Shown here one piece after another: positions 50,924-59,295 of a DNA stretch of 64,000 nt. Both the position numbers and the translations under genes were made by a program. Below the pieces are notes generated by a model. That model worked only from the letters and a program-made list of their open reading frames with translations. It searched no databases and had not been told where the DNA came from. Each line of letters starts with the position of its first letter. Position 1 is the stretch's first letter. Origin of the DNA: Bigelowiella natans CCMP2755 (lineage: Eukaryota; Protista; Cercozoa); NCBI GenBank assembly GCA_000320545.1, contig ADNK01001859.1:1-64000 (forward strand), written 5' to 3'.

Positions 50924-51818
50924 AGTAGTCGGAAGAAGGCCAGGTAGGAAGAGGGCGGGAGGGCGGGTTTTGTAGTTTGCTGTTTGGTTAGCTTTCAACA
51001 GTAGATTGCAATAACGGACAACGAAATTCCTTTCATTTAATTTTTACGACAAATTAATTTGCTCTATTTCAATCTATTTTATTCGGCATTATGAAATTCG
51101 TCATCGGAAAACGTGGAGAATTAGGATGGAAACCTCAATGTTTTGTGAGAGTTGAGCTGTTCCAAAATAGATCTCGCAAAGAGGATATCCTTGGTAATTT
51201 CTTACATACGACATACAATTACTACTCATCTTCTGATAAAAAGAGATTTCAGAGCATCAAAATACTACGGAAAATATCCTGGATTGCCATCTGAATTACT
51301 GTCTTCCCGGCGATACAGCAAATTGATACATGCATCACCAAATATTTTGTGCATGTTGCCCACAAGCAGCGAACATGCGATCATTTTTAGCCAGTTGTTT
51401 GGCCAATCTTTCTCGGCGTCTGATGTCAGCTTACTATTGACGCACGGAGCGAACATGTTCCATTCCCAACTCAGCAACTTGAAGCTCAGCTTTTTTATGG
51501 CTGAGAATTTTTTTGAGAATTCCGGTTTTGGAAATCGAATTGCGAATACCGCCACCATTCAAGGGCTGAAAGAAGAGATCAGTTGTGATATTGGGTAGAA
51601 ATTGGCTGCCTTTGGTTTAAACGAAAAGTCAAGTTGGTCTGAGTTGCTGGATTCTCTTGGAATGGCTCCCGAGACGTGATACGGAAGACGTGTGAGACTT
51701 GACTAAAGGAGGTTGGTGAAAGTATATAGCCTTACTAACATGAATTAAACCATCCAGACCCAATCTAATCATTTGTCTTCTTGGTCGTGAAGGTGAATCA
51801 TCAAACGGAGTGACAAGC

Positions 51819-54480
51819 ATGAAGAAACAAGTTCAATGTTCGCTCATTTTTCTGTCGTACTTCTTCGCCACCGTTGGCGCTTCATCTTTCCCTCCTTCCA
51901 TGCCTTTCGACCTCGACGAGCTTATGTCGGGACCTCTTGATGATGCAAAATGCAATATTGAGGCGGTTGACATGGCGAATAACGTCCAGCTCGCCTGCAT
52001 CCTGTCAGACCTTATGGTAATCAGTGTGACGATGACGATTGAAAGCACATGGTTTTGGTAGTATTCTCCCTCTTCCTCATTGCTTGTCCTTCGTTCAATG
52101 TATTTGTTAATTATGCAACGATAGGACACGACTTTCTTCCGATTGTTCACCGTCGACTTGGAACGCAAATGCCCATTTTTCCAAAAATCCGAGCTTCCAA
52201 AAGCACCCGAAACATGCTCGGGAGGTGGCCCCGATCCGATGCCATTCTCATTCGGGGGCGGGGATGGATTTAGCGAAGATCAACCTCCTAAACCGGCTTG
52301 CTCACTGGAGGGGGCATCAGGGGCGAATGAACCTCCGTTTGCAGGTAGTGGCAGTAAACTTCCACTTTCCTCCGCCACAAAAAGGCGAAAGATTGAACCG
52401 TTCGCAGCGCCTACAGACGAGGTTGACCAGTCGCTCTCCAACAAGGAGAATGAAGCACTTGAGAACTCGAGGGCGAAACAATGCGACGACGAAAATCTGC
52501 CGACCTTTTGGTTAGACATGTGTGATGGGATCGGAGTAACGGGGAAAGATCGAAAGACGGTCAATCTGCGGAAGAACCCCGAACGATGGACTGGGTAATA
52601 TATAGTAGCAGAAACACCCATATCACTATATGTAAACATTATTCTTCTTCCCGAGTAAATATTGCTAGAATGCCAAGTGCACGTTGTGCATCTCGTTTTC
52701 GTGGTTGCATGAGGATGCGTTGGAGAGAGGAAGCGAGCGTCCTTCATAGCTTTCATTCCCATTCCACTTCTCCTTTTCCTCTTTCTCCTCAACACAAATT
52801 TAGTCAACTATTTGTTGTTACGGCAGGTACAATGGGTCGCAGGTTTGGCAGGCGATATATCAGGAAAACTTTCTCGCTACTAACAGGAACAGCTCCACGA
52901 AGAAGCAGAAGGACGACCTAGTATACGAAGAACGGCTACTTTACAAGCTACTATCGGCCATGCACACCTCTATTAACGTCCATATCGCCCTTGACCATTA
53001 CCCTCCTCGAAAGGGTAAACGCACACGGTGGGAGCCGAACCCTGCACACTTCGTTGACCGTTATGCAGACCACCCTGACAGAATTAAAAACCTTCACTTC
53101 GGCTTTGTCGTGCTCCTCCGCGCCGTGAGAAAGGCGGGGCCACAGCTTCTGGAGATGGACTATCGAACAGATATTCTTGCCAACGCAAGTAGCCCTGAAG
53201 GGACCGGAAGGCACACCAGAGCGCTTGTTGAACGCCTTCTCCAAACGGACATGCTCGCTTCTTGCAATGAGGTCGTTGCTAAACCACTCGTCGCAGCAGC
53301 AGCAGCAGCGGCAGCAGCAGCGGCATTATATACTACTAAGAGCGGTGCTGTACTCTCAACTACATAATCATTCATTTGTGGCAAAAAAGCTGCCATGGTT
53401 AAGAAGTGTGTGTATGTACAGGTGTTCGGAGCGTTCGACGAAAGCCTCCTATTCCAGAGCAATAGGGACGGCACTCCTGTGGCACAGCTCAAGCGTCATT
53501 TCAAGCAGGTCGTCCAAACCTTTCCTCCTCCTCACACCCACAAGCAGTATCTCAAAAAAGAAAGAATCACTGCGCTCATGCTGAATAGAGCACCGACAAT
53601 AAGAACAGCAAAGGCTCGCTATCGCCCCTAAACAGAATTATAATAACCAAAACCAACGATGTATTGTGTATGATGATACGGAAGGTGTTCCGCAACATCT
53701 CCCGAGTGCTGGACTGCGTCTCATGTCAGAAGTGTAAGCTGCATGGGAAACTGTCGCTGCTCGGACTGGGAACCGCGCTGAAGACGCTCCTCCTCCCCGC
53801 CCCACTTCTCAAAGAGGGGTTGGTAGCAGTAGAAGAAGAAGAAGAAGGAGAAGGAGAGCAGTTGTTGGCATGACACACGAAGAGGGGGGATGGGGATATG
53901 AAGAAGAAGAATATGAAGAAGCTGCAGTAGCAGCAGGGAGAGAAGTACCGGTTTTATGGATCACAGTACATTATTAAAAGCGAGAGTATGGAAAAAGGGA
54001 GTGCTTTATTATTTAAGTGCACCTTCGCCATGAATCCTCATCCCCCCCCCCTTCCCCCCTCCCCTCGTATTGTTGTGTTCCTAGATTGCGCCGCGAGGAG
54101 GTTGTTGCCTTGATAAATACGTTGGGGAAGTTCTCTAAAGCGATTCAAGGTGGTGACTGCCGTCTGGTCTTGTTGCCATAGTTATTAGTCGATATTATTT
54201 CCAAGGCTCTCCAATTTTAAAGAGAGAAAGAAGGCTACTCCCCGCCTTGATATATCACCTGGAATACGTTGGGCATGAACCCTAGTATACGTGATGTCGT
54301 CAGAAGCATTGCTCATCACCAATAGGGTGTCGCCAGAGGCATTGCTGTGAGCACTATCTCTATTAATCACGTCGTCTCACAACTTTCATCATCATTATCA
54401 TCATCATCATCATCATCTTCATCATCTTCTTCCTTGATTTTGCCAGGAGCTCGCGACCTAACGATGATGTACCGCAAGAA
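51819..54480 (+). other. ERO1 domain of the fusion
   Basis: [99 protein letters not shown] (CxxCxxC active site), [27 protein letters not shown]. Confidence 0.95.
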
Positions 54481-54933
54481 GCTCAACTCTTTGCTCCTAA
54501 AGCAGCCGAAGGGGGGGGCTAAGAAGGGAGTAGGAGTAGCAGACATTCCTAGTAAGAAAAGTAGTCGCGGGAACGCGAAGATCAAACCCGAGCCATTGCA
54601 TCAACAGGAGGTGCGAGAGGCGGGGTTGAAGGGAAGCAATGGCTTCTTCTTATCATCCTTCCTCCCATCATCATCATCATCGTCGTCTTCGTCGTCATCA
54701 CAATATGCTCTTCAAGGCGGCTACGCTGGTGCTGTGAGCGCCGCCGATGCTGCAGTGGCAATGATTGCTCAGCTCTCTTCGGGCAATAACAAGAAGGACG
54801 AGCCAATCGGAGGAGGAGGAGGAAGGGAAGTAAAAAAGCTGACTCAAGATGAGGAAGACCTGCTATTGGACTCCGCTCTCGGTTCGTTGTTTTGAGATGA
54901 TAATAATAGGAGAATAAAATGGTTGTAGAGAAG

Positions 54934-54971
<38 letters not shown>

Positions 54972-57705
54972 CCACAATGGTTGTGGGAAGGGTAGTAGGA
55001 CTAATGTGAGTGAGTAATAAACACTATTTAAGAGAGTGGTACTCGTAGGATTTACTTCCCTAAGCTCATCCTTATCTCATAGCAATCAATTTTATAATAA
55101 TGATAATAATACTACTACTAATATTATTAGTAATAATAGTAATAATAAAGCATGTGCAACTAACGCACTCTGCTCTCTGCCTTCTCCTCCTCCTCCTCCT
55201 CCCTCTCTGCTACTGCTGCTGCTGCTGCTGCTCTTTTTAGGGTTTGATCCACGTGTGCTGATTCTTGCCCGGCACTACTCGTCATCATCATCACCATCCT
55301 CATCATCGTCGTCGTCATCATCCTTTGCCCGCCATGCTCTGAGAGTAATCCGCAACCTCCCCCCCCCCATCGCTGCTACCTTCGGGTCTGCTGCAAGCAC
55401 AACATCACCGAGAAGGCCTGTTGGGGGCAAGGAGGAGATCGTGTACGACCTGATCGTAGTGGGGGGGGGGCTGACAGGACTGACAGCTGCGCTCACAGTG
55501 CTGGATGGCGGAGGGAGTGTTGCGATTGTGGAGAAGGAACCCTTCCTTGGGTAACTACTACTACGATGTGTTTGCAAGGATTATGATCTTTTCTAATAAT
55601 AATAATAATTATGGTAATATATTGACATGATGATATATCGCACGTTGATAGAGAAACGGCGGTGATTATGATGGTTGTCGTAGAGTAGTTAAGTAGTTTT
55701 GGTGTTCGCTCTTATTGCAATCCAACGCCATCATCTCTGCTTACATGTCGTCGTCGTCGTCGTCGTCATCGTCGTCGTTGTCTTCTTCTTGATGTTTTCG
55801 GTGGGTGGTTGGTGCTGCTTTCTTTACCTTACAACGATACGATAACGATACGACGATAAATAGTGGCAATTCGGCGTGGGCTAGTTCTGGTGTAAATGCA
55901 GCGCCACCGCAATATGACGATGGGGAAGAGGCAGAATCCTCTTCTCAAAATGAAGACAACGGGAGCGTTGATTCCATAGCCAGGTCATCAACAATCCCCG
56001 CATTTTCATCATCATCATCATCATCATCATCATCGTTATCTTCATCACTATATCATTCCACCATCAAATCGTGAGTGATGCTATGCTGATATGCTACAAT
56101 TCCATTACACGTCGATGGATGTTATCACCCGTTCATTGAGAAATGAGACATAACAACAGCGCCTTACCACTACACTTAGATTCGCAAGAGATACGCTTAA
56201 ATCTGGAAATGGCGACGAAGGGCTCGTTGCAGCACTTGCCAGTGGTAAGAGTAGGAGAGCGCTAATATGTACAGAAGATCAATCTCCCAGTTGAATATTT
56301 AAGGATGATACGCAAACTACAACAACATGCAAATAACAATAATCGTCATTTCGCCCCTGTTTCAATAAAATCTGTGCTTAAAGTTCTCCTCGATCCGTTT
56401 GCGTCTTATCTGTCTACTGTCTCTGTGTGTTTTGGGGGGGGGGCATCAGGGAGCATGAGCGCTGTGAAATGGATGGAAAAGCGGCTTGACATAGAACTGG
56501 TGACCGATTCATATATGCAGCACTCGTGTATAGTAAATGCTGTGAAACGTGCTCCTGCTTATTGCCGATTTTTTTTTCTTGTTCTTTTCTCTTCTCTTCT
56601 CTTCTTTCTGGTTCTCCTTCTTCTTCTTCTTCTCAGGACAAAGTAGCACAGCTAGGTGGACACTCAGTCGCAAGAACGCGAAGGTTGTTGATGATGGCCA
56701 ATACTGACTGACGACAACAAAGAAGAAGACGAAAGGAGGAGGAGGAGGAGGAGCATGTGATAATGATAATAATCATATTTCTTCCTTTGTTACTACCATA
56801 GATCCAAAGGCGGGATGATAGGGCAAGAGCTTGTGACAAGGTGCTGTTGATGAATGACTGATGCTGTCCTTCTCTTATATGATTGATCGATTCTTAAGTA
56901 AGAAGAGAGTGGTGATGGTGGTGGTGAGAAAGCTTTTAGGTTGCTGCTTTACCAGACCATCTCCTCTTTTTGTGGTGATTGCGGTGTATAACAAAAATAC
57001 TTAAACGGGTAGTCGGAGGAGATCTTTGATTCTCGTGTACTTAACGAATTTTGGTTCATTGATTCTTTAACCCCGTCAACTCAAATTCTCTCCTCCTCCT
57101 CCTCCTTCCTGAACAATGTAGGATTGCTCGAATCGTAAAGACATTCGCAGCAGATTTCAAGAATGGCGATGGTGCTGCTGCAGCTGGTGCTGGTAATCGT
57201 GGAGTTCCTCTCTTCAGACTCCTAACTCGTGCGACTGCCACACGTATTGTTCTCGGTGAAGCAGAAGACGCCTCCCCCCCCCTGGGAGGAGTGAACATAT
57301 TACACTACAGCCTTGCTGATAAGACGAGGAAGAAGCAGGCAAATAGCACCACCACCACCACCATCCAAGGAACTCTCAAAGGCAGGTATATTGCGGTGAC
57401 TACGGGAGGCTATGCGAACGACCGCAGGAGCCATGGGCTACTATATTCAAATCGGCCGGTAAATGTGCGAGTGAGTGAGTTAATGTGTGTGTGTGTGTGT
57501 GTGTGTGTGAGTACAGTGCTTCATTATTCCAACTGTGTGTACGTATGACGTATGGATTCGTATTTATGTGCATGTGTGAATGGATGGCTGTGCTCTACCG
57601 CACCCACCCCACTTGGCACCACCAGCAGCCTCTCTGTTTCTCTAAACAGAACCCGTACGTTTGTCTGTTGTAAGCCGTAGAATAAATAAAATATGCATAT
57701 GTAAC

Positions 57706-57742
<37 letters not shown>

Positions 57743-58795
57743 TAAGCACAAAAGTGCGGATGATTGATCTTATCTCTGCTCCCCTCCCTCTTCCCCCCCC
57801 CCCCTCCCCCTCCTCCTCCTCCCCCACCCAGGACCTGCAAGGGTTTCCAACTACAAACGGGCGTTGGGCCACTGGGGATGGTATAGGCCTCGCGACGGCA
57901 GTGGGTGCAGATACTGTCGACATGCAGCAGGTTCAGGTGCATCCAACAGCCTTCGTTGACCTAGACCACCCCACCGCTGCGCGTAAAACCCTCTGTGCGG
58001 AGCTTCTGCGTGGGGTCGGCGGGATCTTGCTGAAGCGAACATACACCACCAACCGCTTTGTAGACGAGCTTGCCCCTCGCGACGAGATTGTCGCGCGAAT
58101 GAAAAGTGCGGCTGCGGAGTCCGGCTCCCCGTCCTTCGTCATTCTTCTGTCTGAGGCGATGAGCCAGGCGGCAGGAAAGCACGCAGAGCACTACCTGAAG
58201 AAGGCTTTGCTTCGTCGATTCGAGAGCATCGAGGACGTTGCCACGTGGGGGAACATGTCCACTGCCGCATTGAAGCAAACGCTGACGGAATACAACCGCC
58301 ATGCCGCAGCTGGTGGCGCTGGCCCTCACGGCAAGAGGTTCTTCCACAACACGCCAATTGACACCGAAGGAGGATTCGTAGCTGGGGTCGTGGTCCCTGC
58401 CATCCACTACACTATGGGGGGACTTCGCATAGCACCAAACGCATCGGTCATAGCCAAATCGGGAGCAGAAATCAAAGGGCTGCTCGCGGGGGGGGAGGTT
58501 ACTGGAGGCATGCACGGCAAGAATCGGTTAGGAGGGAACGCCTTGACTGAATGTGTGGTCTTCGGACGTACTATTGGACAACGAGTGCTACAGGAGAAAG
58601 ATGAGTGGAGAAAGGAAGAGGAGGAGGAGGAGGAGGAGGAGGAGGAGGAGGAGGAGAGCGAAAGAGACGCCCCCTCCTTGGAAGGGGCTGCTGGTCTTAG
58701 TAGCAGCGGTATTACCCTGAAGAATGTGTCCTCTTCCGAGCTGTCTAAGCATGCATCGGCAGAGGACTGCTGGGTTGCATTGTTTGGAAAGGTAT

Positions 58796-58829
<34 letters not shown>

Positions 58830-59295
58830 TGGAAGAGGAGGAGGAGGAGGAATGTAGTAACTGCCATCGTAGCCTCACACAATATTAGACTGTTAAATAT
58901 CTCTCCCCTCCCCTCTCTTCTTTCTCCACCGTATTTCTTTCTTTCTCTCTCTCTTTCTTTCTTTCTTTGAGGTGTACGACTTCACCGACTTTGTGAACGA
59001 GCATCCAGCGGGTCCTGAAGCCATTCTTAGAAGTGCAGGTGCCAAAATTATCGACGTTCATCATCATACTACAACATAGGAAGAAGACTGAAAAAAAAGG
59101 GCGGGGATGCATATCAAGCGACAGCCTGCCTATTTTCCCCCAACAGACATTGCCGCTTTGAGAAGATTCGTCCAGCCCATAGTAGATTGACCCTAAGACT
59201 TCTTTGTTGCAGGAAAAGACGGGACTGAGGAGTTTGAGGCTATACACGCCAAGAGCATGTTAGACGATTTCGATCCAATCGGAATATTGCGATGA
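51819..59295 (+). CDS. ERO1: ERO1 - soluble fumarate reductase (Osm1/Frd1/flavocytochrome c type) - cytochrome b5 fusion protein, about 1303 aa, with signal peptide
   Basis: 17 exons with GT-AG introns, all phase-compatible: 51819-52016, 52125-52594, 52827-53271, 53422-53508, 53685-53818, 54085-54149, 54447-54881, 55241-55550, 55864-55983, 56180-56244, 56450-56499, 56637-56683, 56802-56840, 57122-57458, 57832-58791, 58972-59038, 59213-59295 (3912 nt including stop). Domain motifs are given in the three sub-features. Confidence 0.85.
55435..58590 (+). other. FAD-dependent soluble fumarate reductase domain of the fusion
   Basis: Rossmann motif [15 protein letters not shown]...[103 protein letters not shown]. 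The His/Arg/His/Arg catalytic set of flavocytochrome c fumarate reductases is present. Confidence 0.95.
58715..59292 (+). other. Cytochrome b5 heme-binding domain of the fusion
   Basis: [22 protein letters not shown]|[22 protein letters not shown]|[17 protein letters not shown]. Both axial His residues are present (HPAG variant of HPGG, and AIH). Confidence 0.93.

Follow-up and report, generated by a model that had tools for sequence, protein, structure and literature searches.

Gene structure and domain composition

The window analysed here is a 64,000-nucleotide stretch of the Bigelowiella natans CCMP2755 genome (contig ADNK01001859.1, positions 1 to 64,000, forward strand), and at 51819-59295 (plus strand) it contains a gene of 17 exons whose product joins an ERO1 domain, a fumarate reductase (FRD), and a cytochrome b5. 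The product, of about 1303 amino acids, consists of a signal peptide, the ERO1 domain, a partly disordered linker ending in a four-helix module, an FRD of the Osm1/Fcc3 type, and the C-terminal cytochrome b5. A reading of this DNA made from its letters alone, without database searches (the sequence-only reading), had proposed one GT-AG spliced frame of 17 exons and about 1303 residues; re-deriving it from the raw sequence and a three-frame translation gave the same model, with all introns GT..AG, compatible phases, 1303 codons, and a frame that closes at the TGA at 59293-59295. All of the motifs named in that reading were located (the hydrophobic leader, CVSCQKC, the Ser-rich linkers in exons 7 and 8, QVHPT, ELAPRD, HYTMGG, NRLGG, the poly-Glu run, and the pair of b5 histidines). 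Searches with the window were made exon by exon or through orthologues from the databases; where joints are given below, they are cDNA joints from public RNA runs (see next section).

The first six exons encode the leader and the ERO1 domain. Exon 1 (51819-52016, 66 codons) begins with the ATG at 51819 and encodes a predicted signal peptide of about 21 residues (51819-51881), followed by a conserved segment; it is supported by colinear tblastn matches and by the N-termini of P0003 and P0263 (chlorarachniophyte), which have the same hydrophobic leader and FPPS motif. Exon 2 (52125-52594) encodes the N-terminal part of ERO1, with the cysteine of CPFF and a long shuttle loop that carries cysteines (Pfam ERO1 30.7 bits, profile 12-113); its boundaries are those of the public model P0001, and it ends with two bases of a Gly codon. 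Exon 3 (52827-53271) encodes the ERO1 core, including the NPERWTG/YNG junction and, in SAMH, the His of the region binding flavin adenine dinucleotide (FAD) (105.9 bits, profile 116-234); among solved structures it matches yeast Ero1p (3NVJ/1RP4, E about 1e-11) and also human ERO1 alpha. Exon 4 (53422-53508, 29 codons) contains the AFDE motif (joint 53508|53685), exon 5 (53685-53818) contains the active site at 53715-53750 with CVSCQKC at 53715-53735 (59 bits, profile 284-318), and exon 6 (54085-54149) ends the domain (19.3 bits, profile 332-352 of 354). Exons 2, 3, and 5 exceed the cut-off of 27 for the ERO1 family (PF04137), and the profile segments are matched in order over 12-352 of 354.

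Exon 7 (54447-54881) has no Pfam family match; it encodes a weakly conserved Ser-rich linker whose last 15 codons open the helical linker module, and ends with one base of a Gly codon. The junction between the ERO1 and FRD halves is intron 7 (54882-55240, 359 nt, gt...ag), which reads CTC G|gt ... ttttag|GG TTT at 54881/55241 as had been described; if it were left unspliced, the frame would give GSLF and then the TGA at 54893-54895. Exon 8 (55241-55550) encodes the remainder of the linker module, a poly-Ser run, and the FRD Rossmann motif GGGLTG (55462-55479; Pfam FAD_binding_2 29.8 bits, profile 1-32). The claim that the reductase half has no ATG of its own agrees with the three-frame translation, in which the open frame of exon 8 (55021-55551) has no in-frame Met before the Rossmann motif. 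We also considered a hidden FRD start at the ATG at 54919 and judged it unlikely: it opens a frame of 32 codons ending at 55015, would need an extra, unsupported splice to reach exon 8, and lies where there is no contig depth.

The remainder of the FRD is encoded by exons 9 to 15. Exon 9 (55864-55983; joint 55550|55864) is a flavin-binding segment that aligns to the family consensus GGNS.kASSGiNa. It is followed by four short FRD exons: exon 10 (56180-56244; joint 55983|56180 in three runs), exon 11 (56450-56499; joint 56244|56450 in three runs), exon 12 (56637-56683; tblastn with the orthologues P0003 and P0152, and contig offsets), and exon 13 (56802-56840; joint 56683|56802 in three runs, and tblastn). 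Exon 14 (57122-57458) covers the capping-domain region (contig pieces 57120-57459 in runs X1, X2, and X5; tblastn), and exon 15 (57832-58791, 320 codons) holds the catalytic half (FAD_binding_2 121.4 bits, profile 217-414), a poly-Glu run at about 58620-58655 serving as linker, and the opening strand of cytochrome b5. The FRD exceeds the cut-off of 20.4 for FAD_binding_2 (PF00890) in its Rossmann part at the N-terminus as well as in its catalytic part at the C-terminus. The catalytic motifs of exon 15 are QVHPT (57934-57948), ELAPRD (the catalytic Arg at 58078-58080), HYTMGG (58405-58422), and NRLGG (58522-58536), and the active-site His/Arg/His/Arg residues align with the motifs of the yeast Osm1 structure 5GLG, which is also the best solved relative of exon 15 (E 1.7e-44). 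Fcc3-type structures follow (1QJD, 1QO8, 1D4C; E 1e-29 to 1e-35), then urocanate reductase (2e-24) and SdhA (1e-18 or weaker), with aspartate oxidase well behind; in this structure-set search, the FRD half is thus closer to fumarate reductases than to urocanate reductase, SdhA/FrdA, or aspartate oxidase. A further entry, 6KU6, has Ala at the aligned Arg of ELSTRD, unlike 5GLG, and is probably a mutant.

The core of cytochrome b5 is encoded by exon 16 (58972-59038), with the first heme ligand His in EHPAG (59002-59004), and its C-terminal part by exon 17 (59213-59295; joint 59038|59213; 86% identity in tblastn with P0152), with the second heme ligand His in EAIH (59245-59247) and the stop codon. 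The domain is split over three exons that were searched singly, and the pieces stay below the Cyt-b5 (PF00173) cut-off of 23.7 (15.6 bits for the tail of exon 15, profile 2-21; 22.5 bits for exon 16, profile 23-43); intact orthologues score 64-76 bits.

Transcript evidence at the ERO1-FRD junction

The RNA evidence comes from public runs, 20 of which (from 7 studies) contain part of the gene's stretch; most of them include about 0.45-0.49 of the sampled words, which is near the 0.52 of the stretch that is exonic. The sequence-only reading had named transcripts across 54881/55241 as a check, and contigs of runs X1 and X5, from two studies, fit the spliced junction. These two contigs (3681 nt in X1, 3658 nt in X5) lie on exons 5, 7, 8, 9, 14, and 15, and the offsets between their pieces equal the lengths of the exons not printed, fitting all of exons 5-15; the length of exon 6, for example, is the offset between the pieces on exons 5 and 7. 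At the junction, the gap between the piece ending at 54882 and the piece starting at 55328 is 87 nt in both contigs (1940 to 2027 in X1; 1725 to 1638 in X5), exactly the distance from the predicted acceptor (55328-55241). The contig pieces on exon 7 continue 180 nt beyond its repeat, matching the genome as far as 54882 and no further; a 266-nt contig of run X2 departs from the genome at 54882 with 49 more letters. None of the contig pieces listed runs past 54882 into intron 7, and contig depth is zero over 54976-55172 in three contig runs. Elsewhere in the gene, GT..AG joints are listed for introns 4, 8, 9, 10, 12, and 16 (listed, for example, as 53506 to 53683 in three runs, 55549 to 55863, and 59033 to 59208, cut +5, in three runs).

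Some observations weigh against a single, uniformly spliced gene. The ERO1-FRD joint is absent from the listed joint rows, and the junction therefore rests on offset arithmetic in two contigs together with the absence of intron sequence; the row is probably missing because rows beside the poly-Ser repeat of exon 8 were dropped. A minor read-through isoform ending at 54893 may exist and is compatible with the contig data. The raw-read RNA run, X21, placed only 9 reads, too few to bear on transcript starts and ends or on the junction, and a homologue search with exon 7 for RNA-contig fragments spanning the junction found none.

Public data treat the locus as two pieces. The model jgi/Bigna1/138510 (P0001, 682 aa, ERO1 only; Pfam ERO1 275.6 bits) is 100% identical to the window, but according to tblastn it crosses the donor at 54882 and ends at 54892, before the TGA at 54893-54895; at its other end it has an additional upstream exon (51455-51595), with the next exon starting from 51759. 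A separate partial record, P0272 (384 aa), spans the end of exon 14 to exon 17. These two records are what would be expected if there were two adjacent genes, an ERO1 gene ending at the TGA at 54893-54895 and a separate FRD-b5 gene, with the joined contigs being assembly artefacts or rare read-through splicing, since the (TCN)n Ser repeats in exons 7 and 8 could mislead a de Bruijn assembler and the junction joint row is not printed. Such an arrangement, however, would have to produce the same 87-nt offset, matching the predicted acceptor exactly, in contigs from two studies, and exon 7 pieces that pass 180 nt beyond the repeat before leaving the genome at 54882, next to an intron without depth; exon 8 would lack a start codon; orthologues of at least five distant lineages have the two halves in one ORF (open reading frame); and the split would fall inside a conserved folded module (see below). 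The two-gene explanation is thus already largely refuted, and we regard it as very improbable. Instead, both ends of Bigna1 138510 look wrong, since both long contigs begin about 100-105 nt upstream of the ATG at 51819 (if exons 1-4 are spliced as modelled), which fits this ATG and not the extra upstream exon, and since the orthologues begin there with a signal peptide. P0272 also has another exon 16/17 splice (compared with window 58969-59292); we prefer the exon 16/17 model given here because of the cDNA joint 59038|59213 and the family consensus (AIL..AG.DGT). The spliced cDNA contigs, the single-ORF orthologues, and the position of the junction inside the conserved linker module lead us to conclude that the ERO1-FRD-b5 fusion gene is almost certainly real. 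In practical terms, this corrects a public B. natans annotation that halves the gene.

A few features of the RNA contigs concern other parts of the gene. The (TCN)n run of exon 7 draws thousands-fold contig depth from unrelated transcripts and produces spurious joints to 56733. A 228-nt contig of run X2 (59010-59237, depth 40) is unspliced over intron 16, beside the spliced form (depth 121); if intron 16 were retained, the frame would close behind the first heme ligand, and the resulting cytochrome b5 would lack the second His. In the same run, the long FRD contig (55804-55981) stops 60 nt into intron 8, and exon 8 is without contig depth; possible causes are pre-mRNA that had not been spliced, a break in the assembly at the poly-Ser repeat, or a hole left by filtering.

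The fusion family across eukaryotes

The fusion is not unique to the B. natans genome. A search with exon 3 returned many matches of 1000-1280 aa, and six of the seven long matches checked by Pfam contained ERO1, FAD_binding_2, and Cyt-b5, the seventh lacking only the b5. All 120 of the listed relatives of P0003 (the closest relative of the B. natans protein, a complete ORF from an MMETSP transcriptome) have PF04137 and PF00890, and nearly all have PF00173. In a domain census covering 271 retrieved proteins, at least 144 were full-length ERO1-FRD-b5 proteins and 19 were ERO1-FRD proteins, with a median ERO1-to-FRD linker of 125 aa. The carriers include chlorarachniophytes (Norrisiella and Amorphochlora), cryptophytes, diatoms, labyrinthulomycetes, green algae, and diplonemids; among those named are Guillardia theta, Prasinococcus, Mesostigma, Diplonema papillatum, Mucochytrium, Aplanochytrium, Hondaea, Incisomonas, Mayamaea, and Pseudo-nitzschia (example entries are Guillardia theta XP_005833402.1, Amorphochlora GAB5367735.1, and Diplonema KAJ9468581.1). 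Many of these orthologues are complete ORFs from transcriptomes, MMETSP and Trinity assemblies included. The exons of the window align colinearly with P0003 and P0152 from end to end, and the Norrisiella protein is colinear across both halves in tblastn searches.

Database labels for these proteins include "flavocytochrome c", "fumarate reductase", "Cytochrome b5 heme-binding domain-containing protein", "succinate dehydrogenase flavoprotein", and hypothetical protein; under names such as "flavocytochrome c" and "fumarate reductase (NADH)", the ERO1 half goes unseen. We found no paper describing an ERO1-fumarate reductase fusion in open-access full text (subscription journals lay outside the search). 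The sequence-only reading knew of no characterised protein built in this way; that part stands, as no characterised member was found, whereas the uniqueness it implied does not, with 144 of the 271 fetched proteins being full-length fusions. The structural part of its interpretation (one spliced unit encoding ERO1, FRD, and b5) is borne out by the cDNA contigs, the colinear orthologues, and the folded linker module. The fusion family is old, widespread, and so far uncharacterised.

The junction between the two halves falls within a conserved part of the linker. When exon 8 is compared with P0003 by BLASTP, the match begins with residue 1 of the exon (E 4e-20), and the C-terminal 15 residues encoded by exon 7 align immediately before the FDPR motif in Amorphochlora and other orthologues of the chlorarachniophyte clade (z 4.4-6.1, with 0 of 300 shuffles scoring as high). 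This alignment ends one position before the point in the orthologues at which exon 8 starts, so that the residues flanking the B. natans junction are adjacent in their single ORFs. A BLASTP comparison of exon 7 with the linker of P0003 found no match, and the conserved tail was seen only by targeted local alignment with shuffling controls. In an AlphaFold2 model of P0003 built on a 54-sequence alignment (mean predicted local distance difference test score [pLDDT] 81.8, predicted template modelling score [pTM] 0.56), residues 480-542 form a four-helix module with pLDDT of 91-95 that includes the position of the B. natans splice junction (residues 515-517).

Active-site conservation and the ERO1 clade

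We examined residue conservation in an alignment of 54 fused orthologues. Invariant in all 54 are, in ERO1, the cysteines of CxxCxxC, two cysteines in the loop and others besides, and the SGMH histidine (His236); in the FRD, the active-site H, R, H, and R; and in cytochrome b5, both His ligands. The B. natans protein has all of these catalytic residues. One near-invariant Cys pair of the family (ENC…mC) is replaced by F and V in B. natans, and is also broken in three chlorarachniophyte orthologues and three other sequences.

The fused ERO1 domains also differ from the canonical ones beside the redox-active disulfide. LHGK was present in 152 of the 152 fused proteins in which the pattern was found, nearly always as CxxCQxC[KR]LHGK, whereas the canonical ERO1s retrieved mostly have CVGC[DE]KCRLWGK; the His of LHGK (window 53742-53744) stands where canonical ERO1 mostly has Trp, and Gln follows the second Cys in nearly all fused proteins, giving a clade signature. 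A phylogeny of each domain had been proposed as a check, and for the ERO1 domain the fused proteins do form a clade of their own: in a tree from a quick maximum-likelihood search, midpoint-rooted, 50 of the 50 fused rows lie on one side of a branch with 100% support in the Shimodaira-Hasegawa-like approximate likelihood ratio test (SH-aLRT), and the canonical LWGK forms lie on the other. Within the fused clade, the B. natans ERO1 falls in the branch of the chlorarachniophytes. Also grouped with the fused rows are fourteen "ERO1-only" rows that have LHGK; P0001, the halved public model of the B. natans gene, is one of the fourteen, and the others may likewise be truncated models. The LHGK signature and the separate clade are as expected if the partnership with the FRD has reshaped the oxidase.

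Paralogues and predicted location

B. natans has a second ERO1, a multi-exon gene of canonical type (CLG/CDKCK, LWGKLQ) on contig C2895 (26000-31417); this contig ends about 0.6 kb after the last ERO1 exon. It also has a stand-alone FRD-cytochrome b5 gene on contig C2863 (109530-111383, minus strand), with a single exon, an ORF of 617 aa, and an HPGG heme motif. The latter is 41% identical to exon 15, and a gene of its type is likely the kind of ancestor that gave rise to the C-terminal two thirds of the fusion.

The fusion protein is predicted to enter the secretory pathway and most likely acts in the lumen of the endoplasmic reticulum (ER). A hydrophobic N-terminal leader is present in about 95 of 132 full-length members, and none of the 132 has a membrane span apart from the Rossmann strand-helix. 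A plastid or periplastid location was rejected on direct reading, as the leader is followed by an acidic stretch that is not transit-peptide-like. A proteome of B. natans plastid fractions includes a fumarate reductase with a signal peptide only, its location given there as unknown, which may or may not be the fusion protein (PMC3542566).

Comparison with known systems

The closest parallel is in yeast, where ER-resident Osm1 can pass electrons on from the flavin of Ero1 to fumarate, either by way of free FAD or in direct contact with Ero1, and where Osm1, Ero1, and fumarate together allow disulfides to form without O2 (Kim et al., 2018; PMC6242907). The Ero1-Osm1 contact is weak (dissociation constant [Kd] about 150-200 uM), and docking in the same study placed Ero1 near the site that is held by the heme domain in Fcc3 (PMC6242907). 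The B. natans protein combines the same two enzyme families as yeast Ero1p and Osm1 (and Frd1), its FRD half being nearest to Osm1 and its ERO1 half nearest to Ero1p among solved structures. It differs in being one polypeptide with a helical linker and an added cytochrome b5, where yeast has two weakly binding proteins and an Osm1 without a heme domain, and in having CxxCQxC[KR]LHGK in place of CVGC[DE]KCRLWGK.

Fcc3 of Shewanella is a periplasmic, respiratory enzyme with an N-terminal tetra-heme c domain. Fcc3/Ifc3 resemble the fusion in having a soluble FRD with the same His/Arg/His/Arg site and heme on the same polypeptide; the fusion, in contrast to Fcc3, has a single C-terminal b5 and an N-terminal ERO1. 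The stand-alone eukaryotic FRD-b5 proteins (the "flavocytochrome c" of fungi, algae, and protists, including the C2863 paralogue with its 41% identity over the catalytic half) have the same FRD and b5 modules in the same order, and lack the ERO1 domain and the linker module. Trypanosomatid NADH-dependent fumarate reductases, which combine ApbE-like, FRD, and cytochrome b5 reductase domains, are likewise multi-domain eukaryotic soluble FRDs with a fused electron-input domain, but take their electrons from NADH through the C-terminal b5-reductase domain, whereas the ERO1 fusions show no detectable NAD(P)H-binding domain. Canonical ERO1s (human alpha and beta, plant ERO1/2, yeast Ero1p, and the C2895 paralogue) share the ERO1 fold, CxxCxxC, and the flexible loop bearing cysteines; they are shorter (about 430-650 aa among those retrieved), have CRLWGK, and use O2 as acceptor (PMC6242907).

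Proposed mechanism and alternatives

We infer that the fusion protein would carry out a fumarate-linked disulfide relay, a mechanism that is the best supported of those considered and, by analogy with yeast, fairly probable. The ERO1 domain would oxidise thiols of the protein disulfide isomerase (PDI) type through its flexible-loop cysteines and CxxC site, reducing its FAD; the electrons would not be given only to O2 (yielding hydrogen peroxide, H2O2), and would go to the FRD flavin of the same polypeptide, either directly or singly through the b5 heme, with fumarate as the final acceptor, reduced to succinate. The tether would stand in for the weak contact (Kd about 150-200 uM) between yeast Ero1 and Osm1. 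Such a relay is plausible because it fits the yeast work (PMC6242907) and the invariance of the catalytic residues. Pfam found no NAD(P)H-binding reductase domain in the ERO1 fusions; the FRD would therefore need a protein electron donor, and the attached ERO1 is the obvious one. We are more tentative about a role for the b5 heme as the relay between the two flavins; equally tentative is the more specific proposal of a self-contained thiol:fumarate oxidoreductase in which this heme would pass single electrons from the ERO1 flavin to the FRD flavin.

The stand-alone FRD-b5 gene in the same genome (C2863), and the great number of FRD-b5 proteins without ERO1, show that the module can use other donors. 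The FRD-b5 part might accordingly be no electron sink for the attached ERO1, and instead an independent lumenal redox enzyme that re-oxidises free flavins or takes electrons from another donor through b5, fused for co-targeting or co-expression; Osm1 does oxidise free FAD, FMN, and riboflavin (PMC6242907), and docking gives no support for ERO1-b5 contact (evidence neither way). An enzyme fused merely for co-targeting or co-expression, however, fits poorly with an architecture, domain order, and folded linker module that are kept across very distant eukaryotes; the active-site signature and clade of the fused ERO1 point to functional coupling, and the yeast proteins cooperate directly. We therefore consider an independent FRD-b5 module unlikely, and favour the relay from ERO1 to fumarate.

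The shuttle loop raises a different alternative. Yeast and human ERO1 have the canonical shuttle pair, Cx4C. In B. natans, 28 residues separate the two loop cysteines (within window 52125-52960), and the separation is 10-44 in 54 of 54 orthologues, a spacing found in every member, so that the wide cysteine loop is a family trait. With loop cysteines spaced in this way (10-44 apart versus 4), the Trp of CRLWGK changed to His in all fusions, one near-invariant Cys pair broken in chlorarachniophytes, and a canonical ERO1 paralogue that could take the housekeeping role, the fused ERO1 might no longer oxidise PDI; it might be a redox sensor or regulator that gates fumarate reduction, or electrons might flow in reverse, from the flavin-heme module into disulfide reduction. 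The retention of CxxCxxC, both loop cysteines, and the flavin-region His in all 54 orthologues argues against a lost oxidase, as does the loop itself, which is predicted to be disordered in the P0003 model, as a shuttle loop should be. The fumarate/succinate couple, at about +30 mV, favours accepting electrons from thiols, against a reverse flow. Sensing or reverse flow is therefore improbable in our view, and oxidation of PDI-type thiols at the expense of fumarate remains the reading that we prefer.

Several points nevertheless weigh against the relay. The wide spacing of the loop cysteines suggests that the shuttle chemistry may differ from that of canonical ERO1; none of the 132 full-length members has a KDEL-like C-terminal signal; fumarate is only presumed to be present in the ER lumen; and B. 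natans is an aerobic phototroph, for which a need for O2-independent folding is not obvious. AlphaFold modelling had been suggested as a check and was run on P0003: it returned the three domains and the junction-spanning module, but with a pTM of 0.56 gives no confident inter-domain geometry. A predicted complex of the P0003 ERO1 (55-440) and b5 (1055-1134) domains, with FAD and heme, scored 0.00 in both runs, which speaks neither for nor against binding.

Implications and minor features of the locus

How Ero1 disposes of its electrons at low oxygen, and how H2O2 from oxidative folding is limited, are open questions, and the weak contact between Ero1 and Osm1 in yeast is the sole enzyme-based answer that has been put forward. 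A 2022 plant paper states that in Arabidopsis an alternative system of this kind had yet to be identified. A conserved covalent fusion with intact catalytic residues is independent evolutionary evidence for an Ero1-fumarate reductase partnership, far beyond fungi. If the relay is correct, an H2O2-free, O2-independent route to ER disulfides would run parallel to canonical ERO1 in Rhizaria, cryptophytes, stramenopiles, green algae, and diplonemids, and the fusion would act as a "Rosetta stone", making fumarate reductase a physiological, evolutionarily old partner of Ero1 and not a yeast peculiarity. The spread of the fusion suggests that disulfide formation without electron transfer to oxygen may be widespread, which bears on the ecology of those marine algae and protists that experience hypoxia or darkness. 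Being a single polypeptide, with two flavins and one heme predicted, the protein also offers a convenient test system.

The ORFs flanking the fusion gene match no Pfam family. A two-codon upstream ORF (ATG AAT TAA) lies at 51740-51748, in the inferred 5′ untranslated region ahead of the main ATG at 51819. Trinucleotide repeats at 54582-54778, 55280-55325, and 58620-58655 encode the poly-Ser and poly-Glu stretches of the linkers, and the introns are filled with microsatellites.

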